In this document: positions 20,606-32,694 of the stretch, one piece after another
Position numbering within the stretch: position 1 is the stretch's first letter
Layout of the letters: each line of letters opens with the position of its first letter
Assembly (NCBI GenBank): GCA_026936335.1
Contig: JAPMXV010000034.1
Span: 1-64,000 of the forward strand
Length of the DNA stretch: 64,000 nt
Source of the DNA: Mantamonas sphyraenae STR306
Taxonomy: Eukaryota > Protista > CRuMs
Direction: 5' to 3'
The notes under the pieces: model-generated
Told to the model about the DNA's origin: nothing
Seen by the model: only the letters and a program-made list of their open reading frames with translations
Database searches by the model: none
Position numbers and translations under genes: made by a program

Positions 20606-20672
20606 GTTAGCCAATTTGCCCCATCTCACCCTCTGCTCAAGGAACGCGCCCCAGCACACACACACATACCAT
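19166..20672 (-). CDS. MOB1: MOB kinase activator 1; multi-exon, including an ATG-only coding exon (20672-20670) and an 11-nt exon (20558-20548)
   Basis: [12 protein letters not shown]...[42 protein letters not shown]...CPVMSAGPK...[15 protein letters not shown]. Confidence 0.96.
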
Positions 20673-20694
20673 CGCAGGGTTGGGTTGGGTCCTC

Positions 20695-22949
20695 ATGAGC
20701 GCTGACGCTGCATGGAAGGCAAGTGTTTCCTGCACCCACCACAAAAAGGCTTTCCCGTAGACACCGCACCCCTGTACAATCGTGCTCCTGTGTCTGTCCG
20801 TGCGTGGCAGCCAGACGCAAATAGTTCCTGACACCCGCCAACATCACACACCGCCACTCTGCAGACCTGGCTCGATTGGACCACTCGTGCGGTATCCCAA
20901 GACGCCCAAGGTATACATGCGCCCTCTCTATCGTCTGTACACCGCCTCATGCACACCGAGTATGCCGCTTGCGGCACACAAGAGTCTGACGCGCCAAAGG
21001 CTCTCCTGCGCCACCATGCCGTCCTGGTCACCTCCATTCTCAACGGCATGGACTCGGAAGATGACTTGCGGCCCTCATCACAATGGTGGTGGGACCCTGT
21101 TCAACGTTGGCTCGACGCAAACAGCTGGCACACTGGCGAGGACGACGACAAACTTGCGCAACAGCCCGTCGCCAAGCGTCGGCGCATCGATCACCTTTCG
21201 CTCCTGCAGCGCATACGATCCCTGCGTACAGCCTCACAACTCAACGACACCCGTCTGCATTCTCACATGCGAACGCGCTCTGTGCTCCTTCAAGCGTGGC
21301 TGGACGGCACGCGCCGCCTCGACACCAGCCTCGATTTAGCCGACCCGCACACCCATTCAGCCCTTGCTTTGCTGCAAGCCCTCGAAAACGGCCACACAAC
21401 CACAGAGGAGGCTCTCACCCTCGCCCACAACCTGATGCAGCACGACCAGCACCACCCACAGAGCACCTGGCTCGCTGCCTACCTCTTGGCACACACTCGG
21501 CCCTCAACCGATCCTGTCCTTGCCCTTGCTCGCCAGCTTCTCCACACTTCTGCATACGAGCATGCTTTCCACCCGTGGATGGCCACAAACACTCTCGCTC
21601 TCGACCACCTGCACTCAACACCGCTCACGCCAGACTCGTACAAACACATCCTTGCTCTCCTGCACACCAGCGCCCACGAGGCCTCTCATCCCTTCACAGT
21701 ATCCCTTTCCCTCATTCTCTTCAACACATTCGCCCTCCACGACCGCATGGGCCGCTACCACAGCTTGAAGACTGTCGCTCGTGCTTTTCGCTCCGCCTTT
21801 GCCCATGAATTTGGCCGGAGAAGTACCACTGTCCCACAACATGCATCTTCTTCCTCCTCCTCCTCCTCCGCCACCTCCGCAACCGCAAACCTCCCGTGGC
21901 GCTTTGTACAAGTCCGTGCCGACGGACGCATTCAGTTTGCTCGCTCTGTCGTCGAGCTGCTGCAGTTGCGCATGTCCAACCCGCTCAACGATTACGACGC
22001 CTCGCTCTGTCAGATCCACCAGTGCGTCATCGACACCCGCCTTGCAATGCATGCTCTGCGAGTCGCCGATTTCTCGCAGGCTCTCACCAGCCTCCGCGCT
22101 ATCGTCCGCCTCCTCCTCCTACGCCGCTCCACCATTGCACGCCTTTTACGCCGCACACTTTCCATCGACCCATGGCTCCTAATCATGGCCTACCTCCACT
22201 GCCTCTACCGCTCGGGCCACATCGAGCACGCTCTCGCCCTCGCTGATGAGGTTGGACGCCGTTTGCCCCTTCACAGCAAACACACCTGGTTTCTGCACGC
22301 ACTCAAGGCCTCCGCGTTTCTCAACAAAGCCCTTGCGCGTGGCCATGCCCATGGCTGGGCTGCCGCTCACTCGCTTTTTGAAGAGTCCTGCCACAGCATC
22401 GACGAGGCCCTCGACCATTGCCAGCATGCACACAGCAGGCGTGCTCTTTACCTCAATCGAGGAATTGCTCTCTTCTGCATGGGTCGCACTCACCGCGCAC
22501 GTACCACCAACAGACACCGCGCCCTACGCGCCATCCTCCTCGCCCATCGCATGACTACCACACACGACGGTGAGGGCGAGCTTATCGACACACAGCACAC
22601 GTACCATGTCGCCTACAACGCCGCCCTCGCCCTCCTGCGACAGGGGCAAACCGTCCAGGGCTGTCTCTTGTGGCTGCGAACACGTGGATTTCCCCTTACA
22701 GACGTCCTCGACGTCTACCAAACCGCCCTGGACGACAGAACACGCGCTCTACACACCAGCCAATGGAACGGTCATCCAGAACAATTGCGCAACTCCCCAG
22801 AACTGAGCTTTGTCTCCCTCGACTGCTGGGTGCTCTCTCAATGGAAAACAATCCGTGCGGCCGCCATTGCAGAGAAGGAAATTGCCCAACTGGCCGAACT
22901 CGACATTGCCGATGACGACTGGGACTGGGAGGGCAGTGCCATCGAATGA
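20695..22949 (+). CDS. Hypothetical helical/TPR-like protein; first exon 20695-20718 joined by a GC-AG intron (20719-20864)
   Basis: 666-aa ORF extends in frame upstream to the AG at 20864; AAG|gcaagt donor; TPR-like LYLNRGIALFCMG and VAYNAALALLRQG. Confidence 0.65.
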
Positions 22950-23099
22950 ATCCCGCCCTCCGCCCCGCCCCATCCACACAAAACTCCAACACAACGTGCG
23001 TACCACCCAGTTTTTCATACCGGAGAGCGACGCCCCGCCCAGTCACCTTCTTGCTCACACACACATTCCCTTTCACCCGTCTCCTGCAGCTCTTCCATC

Positions 23100-24342
23100 A
23101 TGCAGCGGTTGATGCGTGATCTCGCCGGAATGGGCGGCGGCGGCATGATGCAGGGTATGGGCGACGAAGACATCCCAGACACCTCGGAGATCATCTACAT
23201 CTCCTCGCTTGCTCTCCTCAAGATGCTCAAGCACGGTACGTGGACATTTCATGCCTGTCTGGTCCTTTCCGCGCCCCCAAGAACACCGCGCCCCTGCCAA
23301 TTCCGCGCCCGAGCTGGCCCTCCCTGCCCTGCTTCCGCCTTTCGCCGCTCCCTTTGCCATCCTCCCCTCCTCGCTTCTTCCCCCACCCCCTTTTCTCTCC
23401 TCTTTGTATGCTTCCCTCGCTGCACCTTCTACCTTCCCACCTTCCTCGTTGCCCCTGCCATCCAGGGCCACTCACCCGCTTCGCGTTTCCGCGCGCAACA
23501 CTCTCGCCCCACTCCGCGCCTCTCTCCCACTCATCACAGGACGCGCCGGCGTACCCATGGAGGTGATGGGTCTCATGCTCGGTGACCTCGTCGACGACTA
23601 CACCATCAAGGTCGTCGATGTCTTTGCCATGCCCCAGAGCGGAACCGGCGTCAGCGTCGAGGCTGTCGACCCGGTCTTCCAGCAAAAGATGATGGAGATG
23701 CTCGAACGCACTCAGCGATCCTCTGTCGTTGTCGGTTGGTACCATTCCCATCCGGGGTTCGGCTGCTGGCTCTCTGGCGTCGATGTCAACACCCAAAAGA
23801 GCTTCGAGCGACTCCACCCGCGCAACGTCGCCGTCGTCGTCGATCCCATCCAGTCTGTCAAGGGCAAGGTTGTCATCGACGCCTTCCGCACCATCCCTCA
23901 GCAGATGGCCATCCTCGGCCAGGAGCCCCGCCAAACAACAAGCAACATCGGCCACCTGAAGAAGCCCAGCGTCGCCGCACTCATCCACGGCCTCAATCGC
24001 CACTACTACAGCATGGTCATTGGCTACCGCAAGAGTGAGCTCGAACAAAAGATGCTGCTCAACCTCCACCGCCGAGCCTGGACGGCTGGCCTCAAGCTCA
24101 AGGACTACGAGGAGCACGACAAGAGCAACCAGGAAACCGTCCAGGAGATGCTCGAACTCAGCAAGAACTACCACAAAATGGTCCAGGAAGAGAACAGCAT
24201 GACCCGCGAGAAGTTTGAGCTCGCCCAGGTTGGCAAGACTAACCCCAAGAAGCATCTCGCCGAGAATGTCAACAAGCTCATGTCCTCCAACATCAACCAA
24301 ATCCTCGGCTCCATGCTCGACAGTGTCGTGTTCAAGCTCTGA
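23100..24342 (+). CDS. PSMD14: 26S proteasome deubiquitinase subunit RPN11; intron 23236-23539; probable 5'UTR intron 22996-23089
   Basis: [28 protein letters not shown] and the JAMM motif [17 protein letters not shown]. Confidence 0.98.
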
Positions 24343-27988: not shown

Positions 27989-28561
27989 ATGCTCGATCCG
28001 CAACTCCGAAAACGCACCACCGCAGACGATTCGGGACAATCCAACACCAACGATGACATTGATTCCATGCAACATGCCCGTCCCGGTCGCTCCATTGCTC
28101 CAGCGTCTGGCGTCCGTGTCCGCATGGCCAACCAGAGCCACCGCGCTCCAGCATCGGGTCCAGCCGACCTCTCGCGCGACCCGCCCTCGGACTGGACCAC
28201 CACGATCCTCACTCTCCTCCTGCTCACTTGCGTCGCCCTCATTGTCTATCTCTATGGCGTGGCCTACCTTGACGAGGACTCCCAGCATATCTTTTGGGCC
28301 GTATCCCTCATGATCCTCTCCGCCGTGTTTTGGACCTGGTTCATCCTCAACCGCTCCGCCAACAAGAGGCGGCAGGCCAAGGCCAAGATTGCCCAGGAGA
28401 AGGAACGTCTCGCCAAAAAGTACTCCTCTTCATCCTCGTCGTCCTCGTCTGCTGCGTCATCCAGGAACAGGAGCTCCCGAAGACGACAGCCTGCACGCTC
28501 CTCCTCCTCCTCCTCCTCCTCCTCCCCGTCCTTTACAGCAGACAACGTACAACTCAGGTGA
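27989..28561 (+). CDS. Small hypothetical 2-TM membrane protein with a basic/Ser-rich tail
   Basis: Two hydrophobic helices (ILTLLLLTCVALIVYLYGV; IFWAVSLMILSAVFWTWFIL); codon style matches neighbouring genes. Confidence 0.7.
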   Translation: MLDPQLRKRTTADDSGQSNTNDDIDSMQHARPGRSIAPASGVRVRMANQSHRAPASGPADLSRDPPSDWTTTILTLLLLTCVALIVYLYGVAYLDEDSQHIFWAVSLMILSAVFWTWFILNRSANKRRQAKAKIAQEKERLAKKYSSSSSSSSSAASSRNRSSRRRQPARSSSSSSSSSPSFTADNVQLR

Positions 28562-28655
28562 TAGTCCAGACACACTTCCCAACCCTCTTCAACCTGCCTG
28601 CCAGCCACACAAACAAAATGGACTGCATTGCATTTCCAACTCCTCTGCCACCCCT

Positions 28656-29494
28656 TCAGATGGCCTGGTCGTAAAGCGACTGCGCGACCAGCGGTGCGAT
28701 GGACAGCACTTCGAACGGCTTTTGCCCTCGGATGGAGCTCAGCACTCGCGGATTGCTGTTGGTCACCCAGAACGTGTCAAAGATGTCCTCCTCCACGAAA
28801 CGCGTCCACGCATCGCCCGGAAACACTGCATGCGTGCAGTACGCAGACACCTTGGATGCTCCAGCCTCCTTGATGGCTTTGGAGCACTGCACCAGCGTGC
28901 CTCCGGTCTGAACCAAGTCGTCCACAATCACCACATGCTTCCCCTCGGGATTGCCGTCCTTGATCGTCACAATGCGCTTGTCCTCCACTCGCTTCTTCAC
29001 ACAAACCACCAACTCAAACCCGTCAAAGAATGTGCCGAATCGTTTTGCCGCCCCATCGTCGGGGAAGGCAATTGCCAGCTCGTCCTCAGACTCTTCCTTC
29101 AGCTTCTCCAGCTGCTCGTGCAGCAGCGGGATCGCCGTCTCTAGGATCGGGATCACGTTGTCGTCAAAGTAGAAGCGGCCCTGCAGCGTGTGCAGGTCAA
29201 ACACCGTCAGCCGCGTCGGCCCGCCCGGAGACACTGGCGTGCACGAGATCATGCGAGAAAGGGTCTTTGCCGTCGCGATCTCTCCCTCGTACATGACTCG
29301 CTCCATCGTCGCTGTCGGAAAGAACGGAAGCACAAGGTGCACACTTCGCGCGAGGTACTTCGGCAGGGCGTACAGCACCGCAAACTGGTCAAAGATGTCC
29401 CCGTCAAAGTGCATCGACGACAGGAACACCACGTTCCTATGCTTGATCTGCTTCACAGGCACATGGATGTTGGGAAACCCATCTGACCCACGCC

Positions 29495-29529
<35 letters not shown>

Positions 29530-29808
29530 ACGCACACATTCTGTCAGTCGCCGTTTGCGCACAAACACAAACCACCGCAAACGCGTCACCCACTTGAAAA
29601 ATCACTTACCCGGGAACTTCTTCCACGAGATCTCTCCAACTTCAAACGAGTCCGGATACAGCTCCGCGATCTCCTTGGCCAGATCTTCCATGCTTTCTGC
29701 GTACAGAATCAACATCTTGTCGTCCGCTATGAACAGCGCCCTTTGTGTCAGCCGGGCCCTCTCCCTCTCGCTCGTGCCCCTCCTGCTCTCGTCCCATCTC
29801 CCACCCTC

Positions 29809-29842
<34 letters not shown>

Positions 29843-29893
29843 CAACAACGCACACGACTTCTTCAGCTGCTGGATAGAGGAGGTGCTGCTCAT
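28656..29893 (-). CDS. Ribose-phosphate pyrophosphokinase, class II (plant PRS3/4-like); 3 exons
   Basis: WKKFPDGFPNI, LPFFPTATMERV, DLHTLQGRFYF, FPDDGAAKRF, VDDLVQTGGT; first exon MSSTSSIQQLKKS splices in phase. Confidence 0.92.
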
Positions 29894-29905
29894 CGTTCTC
29901 TTTCT

Positions 29906-31192
29906 TCACTGCTCTGTTTCAACTGCCTCTCCCGTCGCTGCATCGTCCTCGTCCACTCCTCCAGCACTCAGCGTCACCTCCACTGGCTCCTCCGTCTTCA
30001 CTGCCCCGCTCTCTTCCCCCGACTCCGACCCACCCGCCTTCTCCGTCTCCTCCTGGCCCACTTGTCCCCCCAGTTCGAAAAAGTCGTCGTCTTTGCTCTC
30101 GCCTGCCTCCTGCTCCTGCCCCTCCTCCGTGTCTTCGTTGTTCATCAACAACAGCACCTTGCCCTGACTCATGTTGGCCGTGTAGTGCTCAATGGCTTCC
30201 TTCACGCTCCGCAGCGGGAAGTACTTGCTCACAGTCACCGTTTCCATGCTCGAGGCCGTCTTTCCAGCTCGTGCTGCCATGTACACGGTCGACAGAAAAT
30301 TCTTGTTGCGCAGGTACACCCCCAGGTGGAATCCCAACAGCTGCTTCTCCTCCAGCACAAAGTCACTCGACTGCAGATTCCCAACCGTTGTCTGCGCCAT
30401 GTTTCCGTACAGGTAAAGCTTCGATTTCGGCGGCAGGCAGTTCATGATTGTTCCAGTCACGTCGTTGGCCACTGCATCAAACGCCACAGTGGCCCCCAGT
30501 TCAGCGGCAAGCGAACGCAGTTCCGCCGCGAAGCCCTCCTGCTCTTGAATCAGCACGTGCTTTGCCCCCACGCTCTTCAGAATCTCCACCTGCTCCTGCC
30601 GCCGCACGATGTTGATCACTTCCACCCCATTCTTTGTGCACAGGGCCAGAAGCAGTTTGCCCAAGCTGCTGCATGCCGGCGTGTTCACGCAGGCTTTCGC
30701 TCCGTTCGCACTCAGAATGTCCACGAATGCAATCACAGTCATCGGGTTCACCAGCATCGTCGCCGCCGCCTCGTCCGGCACGCTCTCGTCCACGTCAATG
30801 CACAGTGTGCTCTTTGTCACCATGTACTCTGCCCAGCAACCGCTTGCGCTACTTGCCTCATCTGGCGAGCAAGCAACACGTTTCCCCACCAACCGGTAGC
30901 CCAGCAGACCGCCCCCATTCTTCACGACCACCCCAGTTCCCTCCAGCCCAGGGATCATTGGCAATTCCTTGTCCACATGTCCGTACTTGCCCATAACCAG
31001 CGCCAGGTCGCTCGGATTGATCGGAGATGCAATCATGCGCAGCAGAACCTCTCCTTCCTGCGGCTCTGGCACAGGAACCTCCTCCACGCGAAGACCGTCT
31101 AGGTTGTCGTCGTTAAATTCGTGCAGGTGGACCACCTTCATTGTCTCTGGGATCTCATTTGCCCCGCTTTTGCTTCCACTGCTGCTGCTCAT
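29906..31192 (-). CDS. MDR-family (quinone/enoyl reductase-like) oxidoreductase with an acidic C-terminal tail; intronless
   Basis: IPETMKVV, ASPINPSDL, PGLEGTGVV, WAEYM, VNPMT, GKVLL. Confidence 0.9.
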   Translation of the reverse strand: MSSSSGSKSGANEIPETMKVVHLHEFNDDNLDGLRVEEVPVPEPQEGEVLLRMIASPINPSDLALVMGKYGHVDKELPMIPGLEGTGVVVKNGGGLLGYRLVGKRVACSPDEASSASGCWAEYMVTKSTLCIDVDESVPDEAAATMLVNPMTVIAFVDILSANGAKACVNTPACSSLGKLLLALCTKNGVEVINIVRRQEQVEILKSVGAKHVLIQEQEGFAAELRSLAAELGATVAFDAVANDVTGTIMNCLPPKSKLYLYGNMAQTTVGNLQSSDFVLEEKQLLGFHLGVYLRNKNFLSTVYMAARAGKTASSMETVTVSKYFPLRSVKEAIEHYTANMSQGKVLLLMNNEDTEEGQEQEAGESKDDDFFELGGQVGQEETEKAGGSESGEESGAVKTEEPVEVTLSAGGVDEDDAATGEAVETEQ

Positions 31193-32511
31193 CCTCTTTG
31201 GCTGCTTTGCCCGGCGCGCTTCACTCGGAATGCAACCATCCCATCCCGCGTGTCCACTCCCAGCACCACCCGTGTGTCCCTGTTCACCCATGCCACCACA
31301 GGCCCCTGCCGGAGACGCATCTCCAGCTCTGGGCCCCGGTCGTCAAACTCTGCTTGTGACACGTACAACACCTGCAAATCTGCTGTCTTGCTCTGGTATC
31401 CCTGTGTGTTGATCGATGCCAGAGATCCATCACGACGAATCGACAGCACCATAGGCCCCTTTGGACACCGCTCGTGCGGATTCCCAAGCATCATCCAGTT
31501 GTGTTTGCTCTTGCCGCACGCGAAGCACACGCTACACACACGCACACAAGTGTCAGTAGTCTTGCACATACATCTCGCCACAGCCATTCATACACCCCTC
31601 CCCGCACTAGCCCCTTACATCTCGCTGCAGCCGGGACAGCGTACAAACCGGCCCTTCACCGTATTCTTCACCACCATCTTCACTCGGCACTCCCCACACA
31701 CCCGCGACACGTCCCCGTTCATATTCCCAATCGCCACTAGGTTGTCCCATTCCTGCTCTGCAAGCTTCTCCCGGTATGCTGCCTCCGCCTCCTCCCGCTT
31801 TGCCTCCATCGTTGCAGCCGCCGCTTCCTCCACGCTCTCCACACTCAATGCCTCTTGGTGCTCCGACCGCTTCCCTCGGCTGTGAGTGTTCTCCAGACAC
31901 GACTCGCAGTACACCTCGTCGCACTCCTGGCAGTACAGGCTCGCCACGCTAGCCCGTCCGTTGGCGTCGCACACGGCACACACTTCTTCCACCATCAACA
32001 CCCCTTGGCCCTCTTCCTTCTCCTTCTCGTCCACATCCGCCTTTTCATCCACCGTGTCCACCACGCCCTCCGTTGTAGTCGCCACAACCCCACCCTCCAG
32101 GGCCGCTCTCGCCTTCTTCACCGCCTCCCCCACCTCCCCCACCTCCGTGCACTCCCCCATCTGCGCCACCATCTTTGTGTACACTCGTTCTCCGTCCTCC
32201 ACACTCATGCTTCGCCCACATCCATCCACCGCACAATTCCCCTTCAGCTCCAACCAACTCCGCGCTCCACACACGTCCGCACACACGCTGTGCCCACATT
32301 CACCCACATTCCGCACACAGTTGCTACTTTCGCACAATCTCTTGCATCCATCACACCGGCTCAACTCCTCCCGATCGTGCGTCTGCCGCCGACCCCGCGC
32401 GTGGAACTTTGCATCGCACTCTCCGCAAAACAGATTGTCTGTACACATCAAACACTCCACTGTTGCCTCCTTCTCGCATGATACGCATGAAAGCCGCCCC
32501 GCTGTGCTCAT
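31189..32511 (-). CDS. B-box / RING-like / B-box / IBR-like zinc-finger protein (putative E3 ligase); intron 31618-31532; start could be 32655
   Basis: CVSC...C..C...FCGECD...H......TH; CDGC...CGHSVC..C...CAVDGC; LYCQECDEVYCESC...H; spliced CGEC...CPGCSEIVCFACGKSKH. Confidence 0.75.
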
Positions 32512-32694
32512 GTTCCCTTCTCCACGTCTCCCGTTGGCGCCTCTGGCGCCAACTTTTCCACCCTGACCCTTGTGTGTTTGTTCTCCATCATCCCTCTTTC
32601 CAACTGCAACCCCCCGCATGCCCACATCCGCTGACACCCGTTTTTCCATCCCCATGACCTCGTTTTCCCCACCAAAGACACACTCTCGCCAACC

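Follow-up and report, generated by a model that had tools for sequence, protein, structure and literature searches.

Genes that follow each other on one strand at very small distances have been described in several systems. In the spliced-leader operons of nematodes and kinetoplastids, unrelated genes share one orientation and are separated by short spacers, as at the locus studied here. Multi-gene RNAs and overlapping UTRs are known in microsporidia and Cryptosporidium (PMC3629993, PMC11761812). The polycistronic loci of green algae are translated by leaky scanning, which requires that upstream AUGs be few (PMC11291117), and their upstream ORFs have medians of 444-600 nt; in Auxenochlorella, the stop codon of the first ORF and the start codon of the second overlap at some of these loci (PMC11291117). 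After long ORFs, reinitiation is as a rule inefficient; its efficiency drops as ORFs become longer, and special elements are then required (PMC10275272).

In this study, we analyzed a 64-kb window (the whole stretch of 64,000 nucleotides) of the Mantamonas sphyraenae genome, in which three genes on the minus strand, coding for a zinc finger, an MDR oxidoreductase and a PRPP synthetase (PRS), lie close together, the first two overlapping in the tetranucleotide ATGA. Judged from the sequence, this trio is most likely a case of extreme compaction with overlapping transcripts, and not a bacterial-style operon.

The overlap of the zinc-finger and MDR genes

Exon 1 of the zinc-finger gene (31619-32511, minus strand; 297 codons plus 2 nt) begins with the ATG at 32511 and is delimited by its ORF, by Pfam matches and by codon log-odds that are positive in the zinc-finger frame. 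It holds an ANCHR-like B-box (1.8e-11) and a zf-B_box match in Pfam searches in which the exons of this gene and of the PRS gene were queried one by one and not as joined proteins, while no homologues of exon 1 were found within the length window searched. The intron that follows (31532-31618, 87 nt) was placed from the sequence, with a GTAAGG donor and a TAG acceptor preceded at about 20 nt by CTGAC; it contains an in-frame TAA, and each of its three frames is either negative in codon score or interrupted by stops. Exon 2, an orphan C-terminal region (31189-31531), is open for 115 codons and terminates with TGA at 31191-31189, and up to about 31241 the zinc-finger frame outscores the two others in codon usage. 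Exon 2 is present as a single copy in the genome. According to the exon translations only, splicing recreates an IBR-like C-x2-C-x4-C-x2-C-x4-H spacing across the exon junction, and the spliced ORF of 411 codons stays in frame to the TGA. By these predicted domains, the upstream gene is a B-box/IBR-like zinc finger.

The MDR gene (29906-31192, minus strand) comprises 428 codons and the stop TGA at 29908-29906, as delimited by Pfam and by homologues. Both a GroES-like ADH_N domain (PF08240, 3.8e-12) and a Rossmann ADH_zinc_N domain (PF00107, 1.1e-13) were recognized in Pfam, and by these two domains the predicted product is a quinone-oxidoreductase-like member of the MDR superfamily. Its homologues (n = 458, best identity 43-44%) are stand-alone proteins that share the same starting point, and in the alignment they lack the acidic tail of about 80 amino acids found at the C-terminus of the Mantamonas protein. 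No conserved neighbourhood was found on the contigs of a homologue, the best MDR homologue being surrounded by unrelated genes.

The first-pass annotation had described a stop/start overlap between these two genes, and both codons are indeed present: the MDR ATG (31192-31190) lies on the zinc-finger TGA (31191-31189), forming ATGA at 31189-31192 on the minus strand. The MDR start proposed there also holds, as it agrees with the sequence, with codon log-odds and with the IPET motif. The IPET codons, located upstream of Met18, count as family sequence because MDR homologues of about 338 amino acids begin with M..IPxTM(R/K)AV. Codon-usage log-odds place a change of coding frame, zinc finger to MDR, between 31240 and 31181, and ATG 31192 is the sole in-frame ATG between IPET and this switch. 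The MDR frame is open upstream as far as 31342, yet its codon score is negative upstream of 31240, including at the other in-frame ATG, 31291.

The tetranucleotide itself is frequent. TGA forms 78 of 119 ORF ends, A precedes it at 21 of 96 TGA ends (an enrichment that varies with the threshold and is not robust), and ATGA turns up by chance at about 14% of the confident ORF ends. It is thus the zero spacing, and not ATGA, that is remarkable, and a downstream start at such an end needs an independent argument, which exists for the zinc-finger/MDR pair and not for RPN11. A second ATGA near RPN11 was considered and found unnecessary, as the alignment of the RPN11 N-terminus with solved RPN11 pairs the first residues of both.

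In a crude scan of ORF junctions over 264 kb of chromosome, 3 of 26 strict junctions fell at -4, -1 or 0 and none at 1 to 32 nt, many of the 26 being exon-intron ends and two of the three cases doubtful; no excess of -4/-1/0 junctions was demonstrated in the 264 kb. The zero-spacer candidates at 195102, 192891, 121840, 12448 and 200524 in the 264 kb were rejected as low-complexity or unsupported. Plus- and minus-strand genes have opposite G/C preferences at third positions, so a single codon model failed and two models performed better; even with two models, starts and multi-exon genes from the crude ORF gene finder are unreliable for spacer statistics.

The start of the PRS gene and its distance from MDR

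The third gene is, by its domains and its closest named relatives, predicted to encode a class II PRPP synthetase of the plant PRS4 type. Its exon 3 (28656-29482, minus strand, ending with TGA at 28658-28656) carries the Pfam domains Pribosyltran, Pribosyl_synth and Pribosyltran_N, and the homologues, 52-55% identical, are named ribose-phosphate pyrophosphokinase 4. Removal of intron 2 (29483-29609, 127 nt, GTAAGT...CTGAC...CAG) restores the W-K-K-F-P-D-G-F-P-N motif conserved in these homologues, while exon 2 (29610-29726), whose codon log-odds are positive, corresponds in the alignment to the N-terminal strand of class II PRS homologues.

Two starts come into consideration. In the first, translation would begin at ATG 29893, which does sit 12 nt past the MDR stop, as the first-pass annotation had claimed; the spacer AGAAAGAGAACG (29894-29905) is a multiple of three, so that the MDR stop and this ATG share a frame. 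A putative exon 1 of 13 codons (MSSTSSIQQLKKS plus 1 nt, 29854-29893) would then be joined to exon 2 over a putative intron 1 of 127 nt (29727-29853) with a (GT)n tract. This model is supported by a correctly phased GTGCGT donor, a CTGAC located 22 nt ahead of the AG, and the ATGAGCAGCA start common to MDR. The pattern AAAGAG....ATGAGCAGCA with this spacing occurs genome-wide only at 29884-29903, and the ATGAGCAGCA start is enriched in the 264 kb, partly through (CAG)n-type repeats. In the second, translation would begin in exon 2 at Met 29715-29713 (MLILYAES...), and the segment 29727-29853 would instead represent the 3′ flank of MDR plus the 5′ flank of PRS. The N-termini of PRS homologues are variable and Met 29715 matches them equally well, while exon 1 has no support from homology and the start at 29893 is a putative one. 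The MDR-PRS junction is consequently of either kind: a near-zero spacing (start at 29893, 127-nt intron) or an ordinary spacer of 190 nt (start at 29715), to be compared with the 150 nt that precede RPN11 in the window. Of the closely packed triplet described in the first-pass annotation, zinc finger and MDR do lie tightly together, but the locus may be no more than a pair, because the 12-nt spacer between MDR and PRS depends on the putative 13-codon exon.

Alternatively, ordinary spacing could be hidden by the gene models at both junctions, with PRS starting from Met 29715 and the zinc finger ending at TAA 31617-31615, about 420 nt before MDR. The fit of Met 29715 to the homologues and the resemblance of 190 nt to the RPN11 spacer are in accordance with this. 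Exon 2 of the zinc finger also has no homologues among 1.84 billion representatives and gives a poor single-sequence AlphaFold model (pLDDT 46). However, the same exon is open for 115 codons in the best-scoring of the three frames, the intron before it has a canonical donor, CTGAC and AG, its removal restores the IBR-like spacing, and putative PRS intron 1 likewise combines an in-phase donor with a suitably spaced CTGAC. The MDR start remains at 31192 even so, and we consider such spacing at both junctions improbable.

It could also be proposed that the neighbours are joined into fusion proteins, zinc finger with MDR by an assembly indel or a programmed frameshift, or MDR with PRS exon 1 by read-through of TGA 29908. 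The frame open upstream to 31342 would allow the former; for the latter, the MDR stop is in frame with ATG 29893. The acidic tail of MDR and the Ser-rich MSSSSGSKSGAN are both linker-like. Nevertheless, the homologous MDRs are stand-alone with the same starting point, no homopolymer is present in the sequence of the zinc-finger/MDR junction, the MDR frame scores negatively upstream of 31240, a shared frame has a one-in-three chance of arising, and a UGA followed by A is not known as a leaky stop context. Fusion therefore seems very unlikely.

Genome density and the transcription of the trio

Small distances are also found around the trio. The divergent starts of the zinc finger (ATG 32511) and of a candidate K+ channel gene on the plus strand (ATG 32695) are 183 nt apart (32512-32694), and 94 nt (28562-28655) separate the convergent stops of PRS and of a plus-strand membrane-protein ORF that ends at 28561. 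As these flanks are tight as well, polycistrony cannot account for the packing there. The published M. sphyraenae genome consists of 25,061,354 bases (25.06 Mb) in 78 contigs with a GC content of 59.19%, and contains 9,416 genes with a mean of 2,282 bp and 12% repeats, so that very little non-repeat spacer remains. Gene models cover about 86% of the DNA, and the genome as a whole is too dense for UTRs to fit between genes. In the published transcriptome, 8,885 single-best proteins were obtained from 9,256 contigs, and a comparison with the 9,416 genes argues that most genes were assembled as their own transcript.

The close packing of zinc finger and MDR forces one of two solutions, either a spliced polycistron with reinitiation or signals nested in the neighbouring CDSs, and these were also the alternatives offered by the first-pass annotation. 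We lean, by a modest degree of belief, towards three separate and unrelated nuclear genes that have start sites and 3′ ends inside adjacent genes, the genome being extremely compacted. Deletion would have eaten away the spacer between zinc finger and MDR until the two genes shared ATGA, the overlap of lowest cost. MDR would be expressed from its own short-leader mRNA, with a start site in the zinc-finger coding sequence, within ~40 nt of its end; the 44 nt directly before ATG 31192 are free of ATG, so a transcription start there would make it the first AUG. The zinc-finger mRNA would have its 3′ end inside or beyond MDR. The RNAs would overlap, some perhaps spanning two genes, and each protein would be translated from an mRNA of its own by ordinary cap-dependent initiation, using the first AUG. 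The three products, zinc finger, MDR and PRS, have no functional link.

No promoter or initiator motif was found within the zinc-finger 3′ end, and the context of putative starts did not differ from that of internal Mets, with no recognizable motif. GU-rich hexamers are enriched on the transcribed strand 0-120 nt after stops; as a marker of poly(A) sites such words were rejected, because they showed no enrichment at convergent ends (6 vs 5 of 16). The sole gene-free 5′ flank of the trio (32512-32694) lies upstream of the zinc finger, as expected of a single transcription unit, and this counts against nested signals.

A true polycistron would be transcribed from a promoter in this flank as one spliced RNA with two or three ORFs, reinitiation taking place at UGA 31189 and 12 nt past the MDR stop. 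The ATGA overlap and the very short second spacer would suit such an RNA, as would the single gene-free flank at the 5′ and at the 3′ side of the trio. TGGGA, the calicivirus reinitiation motif, is found at 31243-31239, 47-51 nt upstream of the would-be restart AUG, the position that it has in those viruses; however, its chance rate on the minus strand is 12-13% per 60 nt, and RNA structure is not unusual at either junction (z = -0.10 for zinc finger/MDR, +1.63 for MDR-PRS). Proven algal bicistrons can overlap in stop and start (PMC11291117), and polycistronic mRNAs have been reported from the compact Cryptosporidium (PMC11761812). On the other hand, both upstream ORFs are long, at 411 and 428 codons, the genes are functionally unrelated, and leaky scanning, the algal mechanism, is excluded by the 29 ATGs before the MDR ATG and the 22 before ATG 29893. 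A spliced bi- or tricistronic mRNA that restarts at AUGA after 411 codons, without a virus-type structured element, in a free-living and deep-branching eukaryote of the CRuMs is in our opinion unlikely. Between the two alternatives, nested signals fit the genome density and the precedents in compact eukaryotes, while no result favours a polycistron with reinitiation.

Another possibility is a polycistronic precursor cut to single-gene mRNAs by spliced-leader trans-splicing or other processing, in the style of kinetoplastid or nematode operons. The genes are co-oriented and unrelated, and an AG is located 9-11 nt upstream of both ATG 31192 and ATG 29715, the latter being also preceded by CTGAC. 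An acceptor upstream of ATG 31192, however, would cut the zinc-finger coding sequence, and neither a pyrimidine tract nor a branch motif precedes this ATG. The 64-kb window has no Rfam matches, spliced-leader RNAs included, a literature search found no link between Mantamonas and polycistrons, and gene orientation in the genome is mixed, with no long one-way arrays. To our knowledge, no spliced leader is known in Mantamonas, and such processing appears highly improbable.

In the eukaryotic tree, Mantamonas is placed close to the base of Amorphea, and among free-living eukaryotes its 25-Mb genome is one of the densest. If promoters and 3′-end signals are routinely nested in neighbouring CDSs, it would offer a new culturable model for transcription with near-zero spacers, and also a warning for gene prediction in the Mantamonas genome. 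If the downstream genes were instead translated from mRNAs that they share with their neighbours, cellular eukaryotic genes would provide a case of reinitiation after long ORFs; coupling by stop-start overlap would then count as a mechanism of eukaryotic cells, and Mantamonas might use it throughout its genome.

Comparison with known systems

With regard to spliced-leader operons, the Mantamonas trio differs in that a zero spacer allows no acceptor outside the upstream coding sequence. The four-letter overlap between co-oriented genes is identical to that of prokaryotic ATGA/TGATG coupling (PMC6728339), which operates on operon mRNA through 70S/30S reinitiation, whereas in Mantamonas it belongs to a spliced nuclear locus of a eukaryote. 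Viral termination-reinitiation, as in calicivirus VP1/VP2 and influenza B M1/BM2, likewise involves a stop/start overlap after a long ORF (AUGA, UAAUG) (PMC2793014, PMC3035654), and an AUG placed at the stop, typical of TURBS, is also found here. In the viruses, a structured element upstream, with a motif complementary to 18S, is required to tether the 40S subunit, while in Mantamonas there is no structure signal and TGGGA is at chance level.

The polycistronic loci of Chlamydomonas, Chromochloris and Auxenochlorella resemble the trio in having co-oriented nuclear ORFs at very short distances, down to overlap. They differ in their short upstream ORFs with few AUGs, the upstream ORFs of the predicted genes in Mantamonas having 1.2-1.3 kb with 29 and 22 ATGs. 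The compacted genomes of microsporidia such as Encephalitozoon, of nucleomorphs and of Cryptosporidium, in which start sites and 3′ ends are pushed into adjacent genes, belong to parasites or endosymbiont remnants. Mantamonas, in contrast, is free-living, a flagellate that has 9,416 genes, whose introns exceed its spacers in length and whose transcript overlap is predicted. It is nevertheless with these genomes that the locus shares tiny or absent spacers, unrelated neighbours and the retention of introns (PMC3629993, PMC11761812).

Gene models and the zinc finger-MDR overlap

The first of the three minus-strand genes at 28656-32511 encodes a protein with two B-box-type zinc modules (PF22586, 1.8e-11) and runs from ATG 32511 to TGA 31191-31189. 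Its unspliced reading frame stops at TAA 31617-31615, and removal of an 87-nt intron (31618-31532), whose signals are GTAAGG as donor at 31618, CTGAC, and TAG as acceptor, keeps the frame open for 115 more codons, up to the TGA at 31191-31189. The second gene, an MDR-superfamily oxidoreductase (ADH_N 3.8e-12, ADH_zinc_N 1.1e-13), extends from ATG 31192 to TGA 29908-29906. In the third, a class II (PRS4-like) PRPP synthetase (PRS), the last two exons (29726-29610 and 29482-28656) are secured by homologues and the splice motif; their splicing restores the conserved WKKFPDGFPN motif, and the product is 52-55% identical to its homologues. The trio is separated from a divergent K+ channel gene by a 183-nt spacer, and at its other end 94 nt separate it from the stop codon of a convergently oriented ORF for a membrane protein.

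The first-pass annotation had reported that the zinc-finger stop and the MDR start overlap as ATGA, and this overlap is well supported. In codon-usage log-odds trained on the contig, the zinc-finger frame is favoured down to ~31241 and the MDR frame from ~31240, and no homopolymer suggestive of an indel was present at the junction. Homologues of the MDR protein are stand-alone, about 338 aa long, and begin with M..IPxTM(R/K)AV. The protein encoded here reads ...NEIPETMKVV, with IPET ahead of Met18, so the coding sequence reaches upstream of that Met, as had been proposed. Between the IPET codons and the point upstream where the frame ceases to be coding, ATG 31192 is the single in-frame ATG, and no near-cognate CTG, GTG or ACG lies in frame between it and IPET. 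The intron signals of the zinc-finger gene are canonical, and in the two exon translations, read separately, splicing gives C-x2-C-x4-C-x2-C-x4-H spacing over the exon junction, as in IBR-type zinc domains. Exon 2 of this gene is the weak point of the case, with no homologues in a search of 1.84 billion representatives and a low-confidence single-sequence structure model. Ordinary spacing masked by wrong gene models is an unlikely explanation of the trio.

The MDR-PRS spacer

The 12-nt spacer proposed between MDR and PRS fared less clearly: ATG 29893 is present, making the junction plausible from the sequence, while its role as the PRS start is unproven. AAAGAG....ATGAGCAGCA is common to this ATG and the MDR start (29884-29903 and 31183-31201), and a splice through T|GTGCGT at 29853 and CTGAC 22 nt before AG at 29727 could join this ATG in frame to the PRS body. 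The putative first exon of 13 codons has no homology support, and the N-termini of homologues are variable. Met 29715 (MLILYAES) would serve equally well as the start, in which case the spacer to MDR would be 190 nt. The combination of AAAGAG and ATGAGCAGCA with a 4-nt gap occurs once in the genome, and the zinc-finger start is likewise ATGAGCA, preceded by a purine-only stretch. The secure PRS intron (29483-29609) and the putative first one (29727-29853) are both exactly 127 nt long and hold a (GT)n tract and CTGACA, their sequences being otherwise unrelated by eye.

The MDR TGA and ATG 29893 share one reading frame (29893-29908), and read-through of the stop would join MDR, via an acidic tail of ~80 aa, to PRPP synthetase. 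Expression of the trio as fusion proteins is considered very improbable.

Genome packing and chance occurrence of ATGA

The published genome of M. sphyraenae comprises 25.06 Mb in 78 contigs (GC 59.19%), with 12% repeats and 9,416 mostly single-exon genes of 2,282 bp mean length. Gene models thus account for ~86% of the sequence, leaving only tiny spacers outside repeats. Of 119 confident ORF ends in 264 kb of the contig, 78 use TGA, and A directly precedes the stop in 21/96 TGA ends, so that ~14% of ORF ends read ATGA, and as a string it is not very surprising. Neighbours are in tandem in 52 of 102 pairs of a crude ORF set, about half being co-oriented. Combined with a frame probability of 1/3, a 100-150-nt spacer open in ~0.2-0.3 of cases and the ~14% of ATGA ends, this predicts, without any coupling, ~50 cases genome-wide in which an ATGA shares the frame of the following gene. 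The unusual feature here is the zero spacing between zinc finger and MDR, backed by the MDR family motif. A strict scan of 26 ORF junctions, a small sample including exon-intron ends, found three at -4, -1 or 0 (the two others doubtful); spacings of 1-32 nt did not occur.

Another ATGA junction, before RPN11 (22946-23102), proved superfluous: the product from ATG 23100 matches solved RPN11/PSMD14 residue 1 to residue 1, which leaves a spacer of 150 nt, where GTGCGT and CTGCAG could mark a 5′ UTR intron. At 20670-20720, candidate divergent starts (CAT 20671-20673 and ATG 20696) lie 22 nt apart around GGGTTGGGTTGGG; each first exon would span only a few codons.

GC skew follows the DNA strand and not gene orientation, both at 1-36000 and along the contig up to 264 kb. 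On the plus strand (G-C)/(G+C) is about -0.24 across the first 36 kb, and its sign flips in blocks (e.g., +0.24 to +0.37 at 180-198 kb), which may be linked to replication. Codons end in C in plus-strand genes and in G in minus-strand genes, so two codon models are needed. In the same 264 kb, GTTGTT/TTGTTG/TGTTGC-type words and GTGTGT are enriched on the transcribed strand 0-120 nt past confident ORF ends; this enrichment holds in both skew classes and does not extend to reverse complements. No enrichment of these words was found at convergent gene ends, so they may be markers of introns and not of 3′ ends.

Expression of the three genes

On balance, we consider it somewhat probable that the trio is expressed monocistronically, as independent, nested or overlapping transcription units. 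The very high published gene density, the functionally unrelated products and the 44-nt stretch without ATG that precedes ATG 31192, where a start site would make this the first AUG, are consistent with such an arrangement. Packing is just as tight at the convergent and divergent flanks, where polycistrony cannot account for it. No conserved neighbourhood was found in the contigs of a homologue, and the published de novo transcriptome holds nearly one single-best protein per gene. Against independent units, no promoter motif was found in the start-context test and no 3′-end motif was found, and the trio has one gene-free 5′ flank only.

The operon-like interpretation of the first-pass annotation has only the spacing in its favour. 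Reinitiation on a polycistron seems improbable, as the upstream ORFs are long (411 codons and 29 ATGs for the zinc finger, 428 codons and 22 ATGs for MDR), and reinitiation declines with ORF length, special elements being required after long ORFs (PMC10275272). Folding at the junctions is no better than in shuffled sequence (z = -0.10 for ATGA and +1.63 for MDR-PRS), and the TGGGA lying 47-51 nt ahead of the restart AUG would be expected by chance at a rate of 12-13%. We found no literature link between Mantamonas and polycistronic expression, and processing of a polycistronic precursor appears remote.

Leaky scanning, demonstrated for green-algal bicistrons (PMC11291117), is ruled out here by the ATGs ahead of the downstream starts. 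Independent, overlapping units would have precedents in microsporidia (PMC3629993) and Cryptosporidium (PMC11761812). Previously undescribed in the Mantamonas lineage, tight or overlapping genes are known in compacted eukaryotic genomes such as these.
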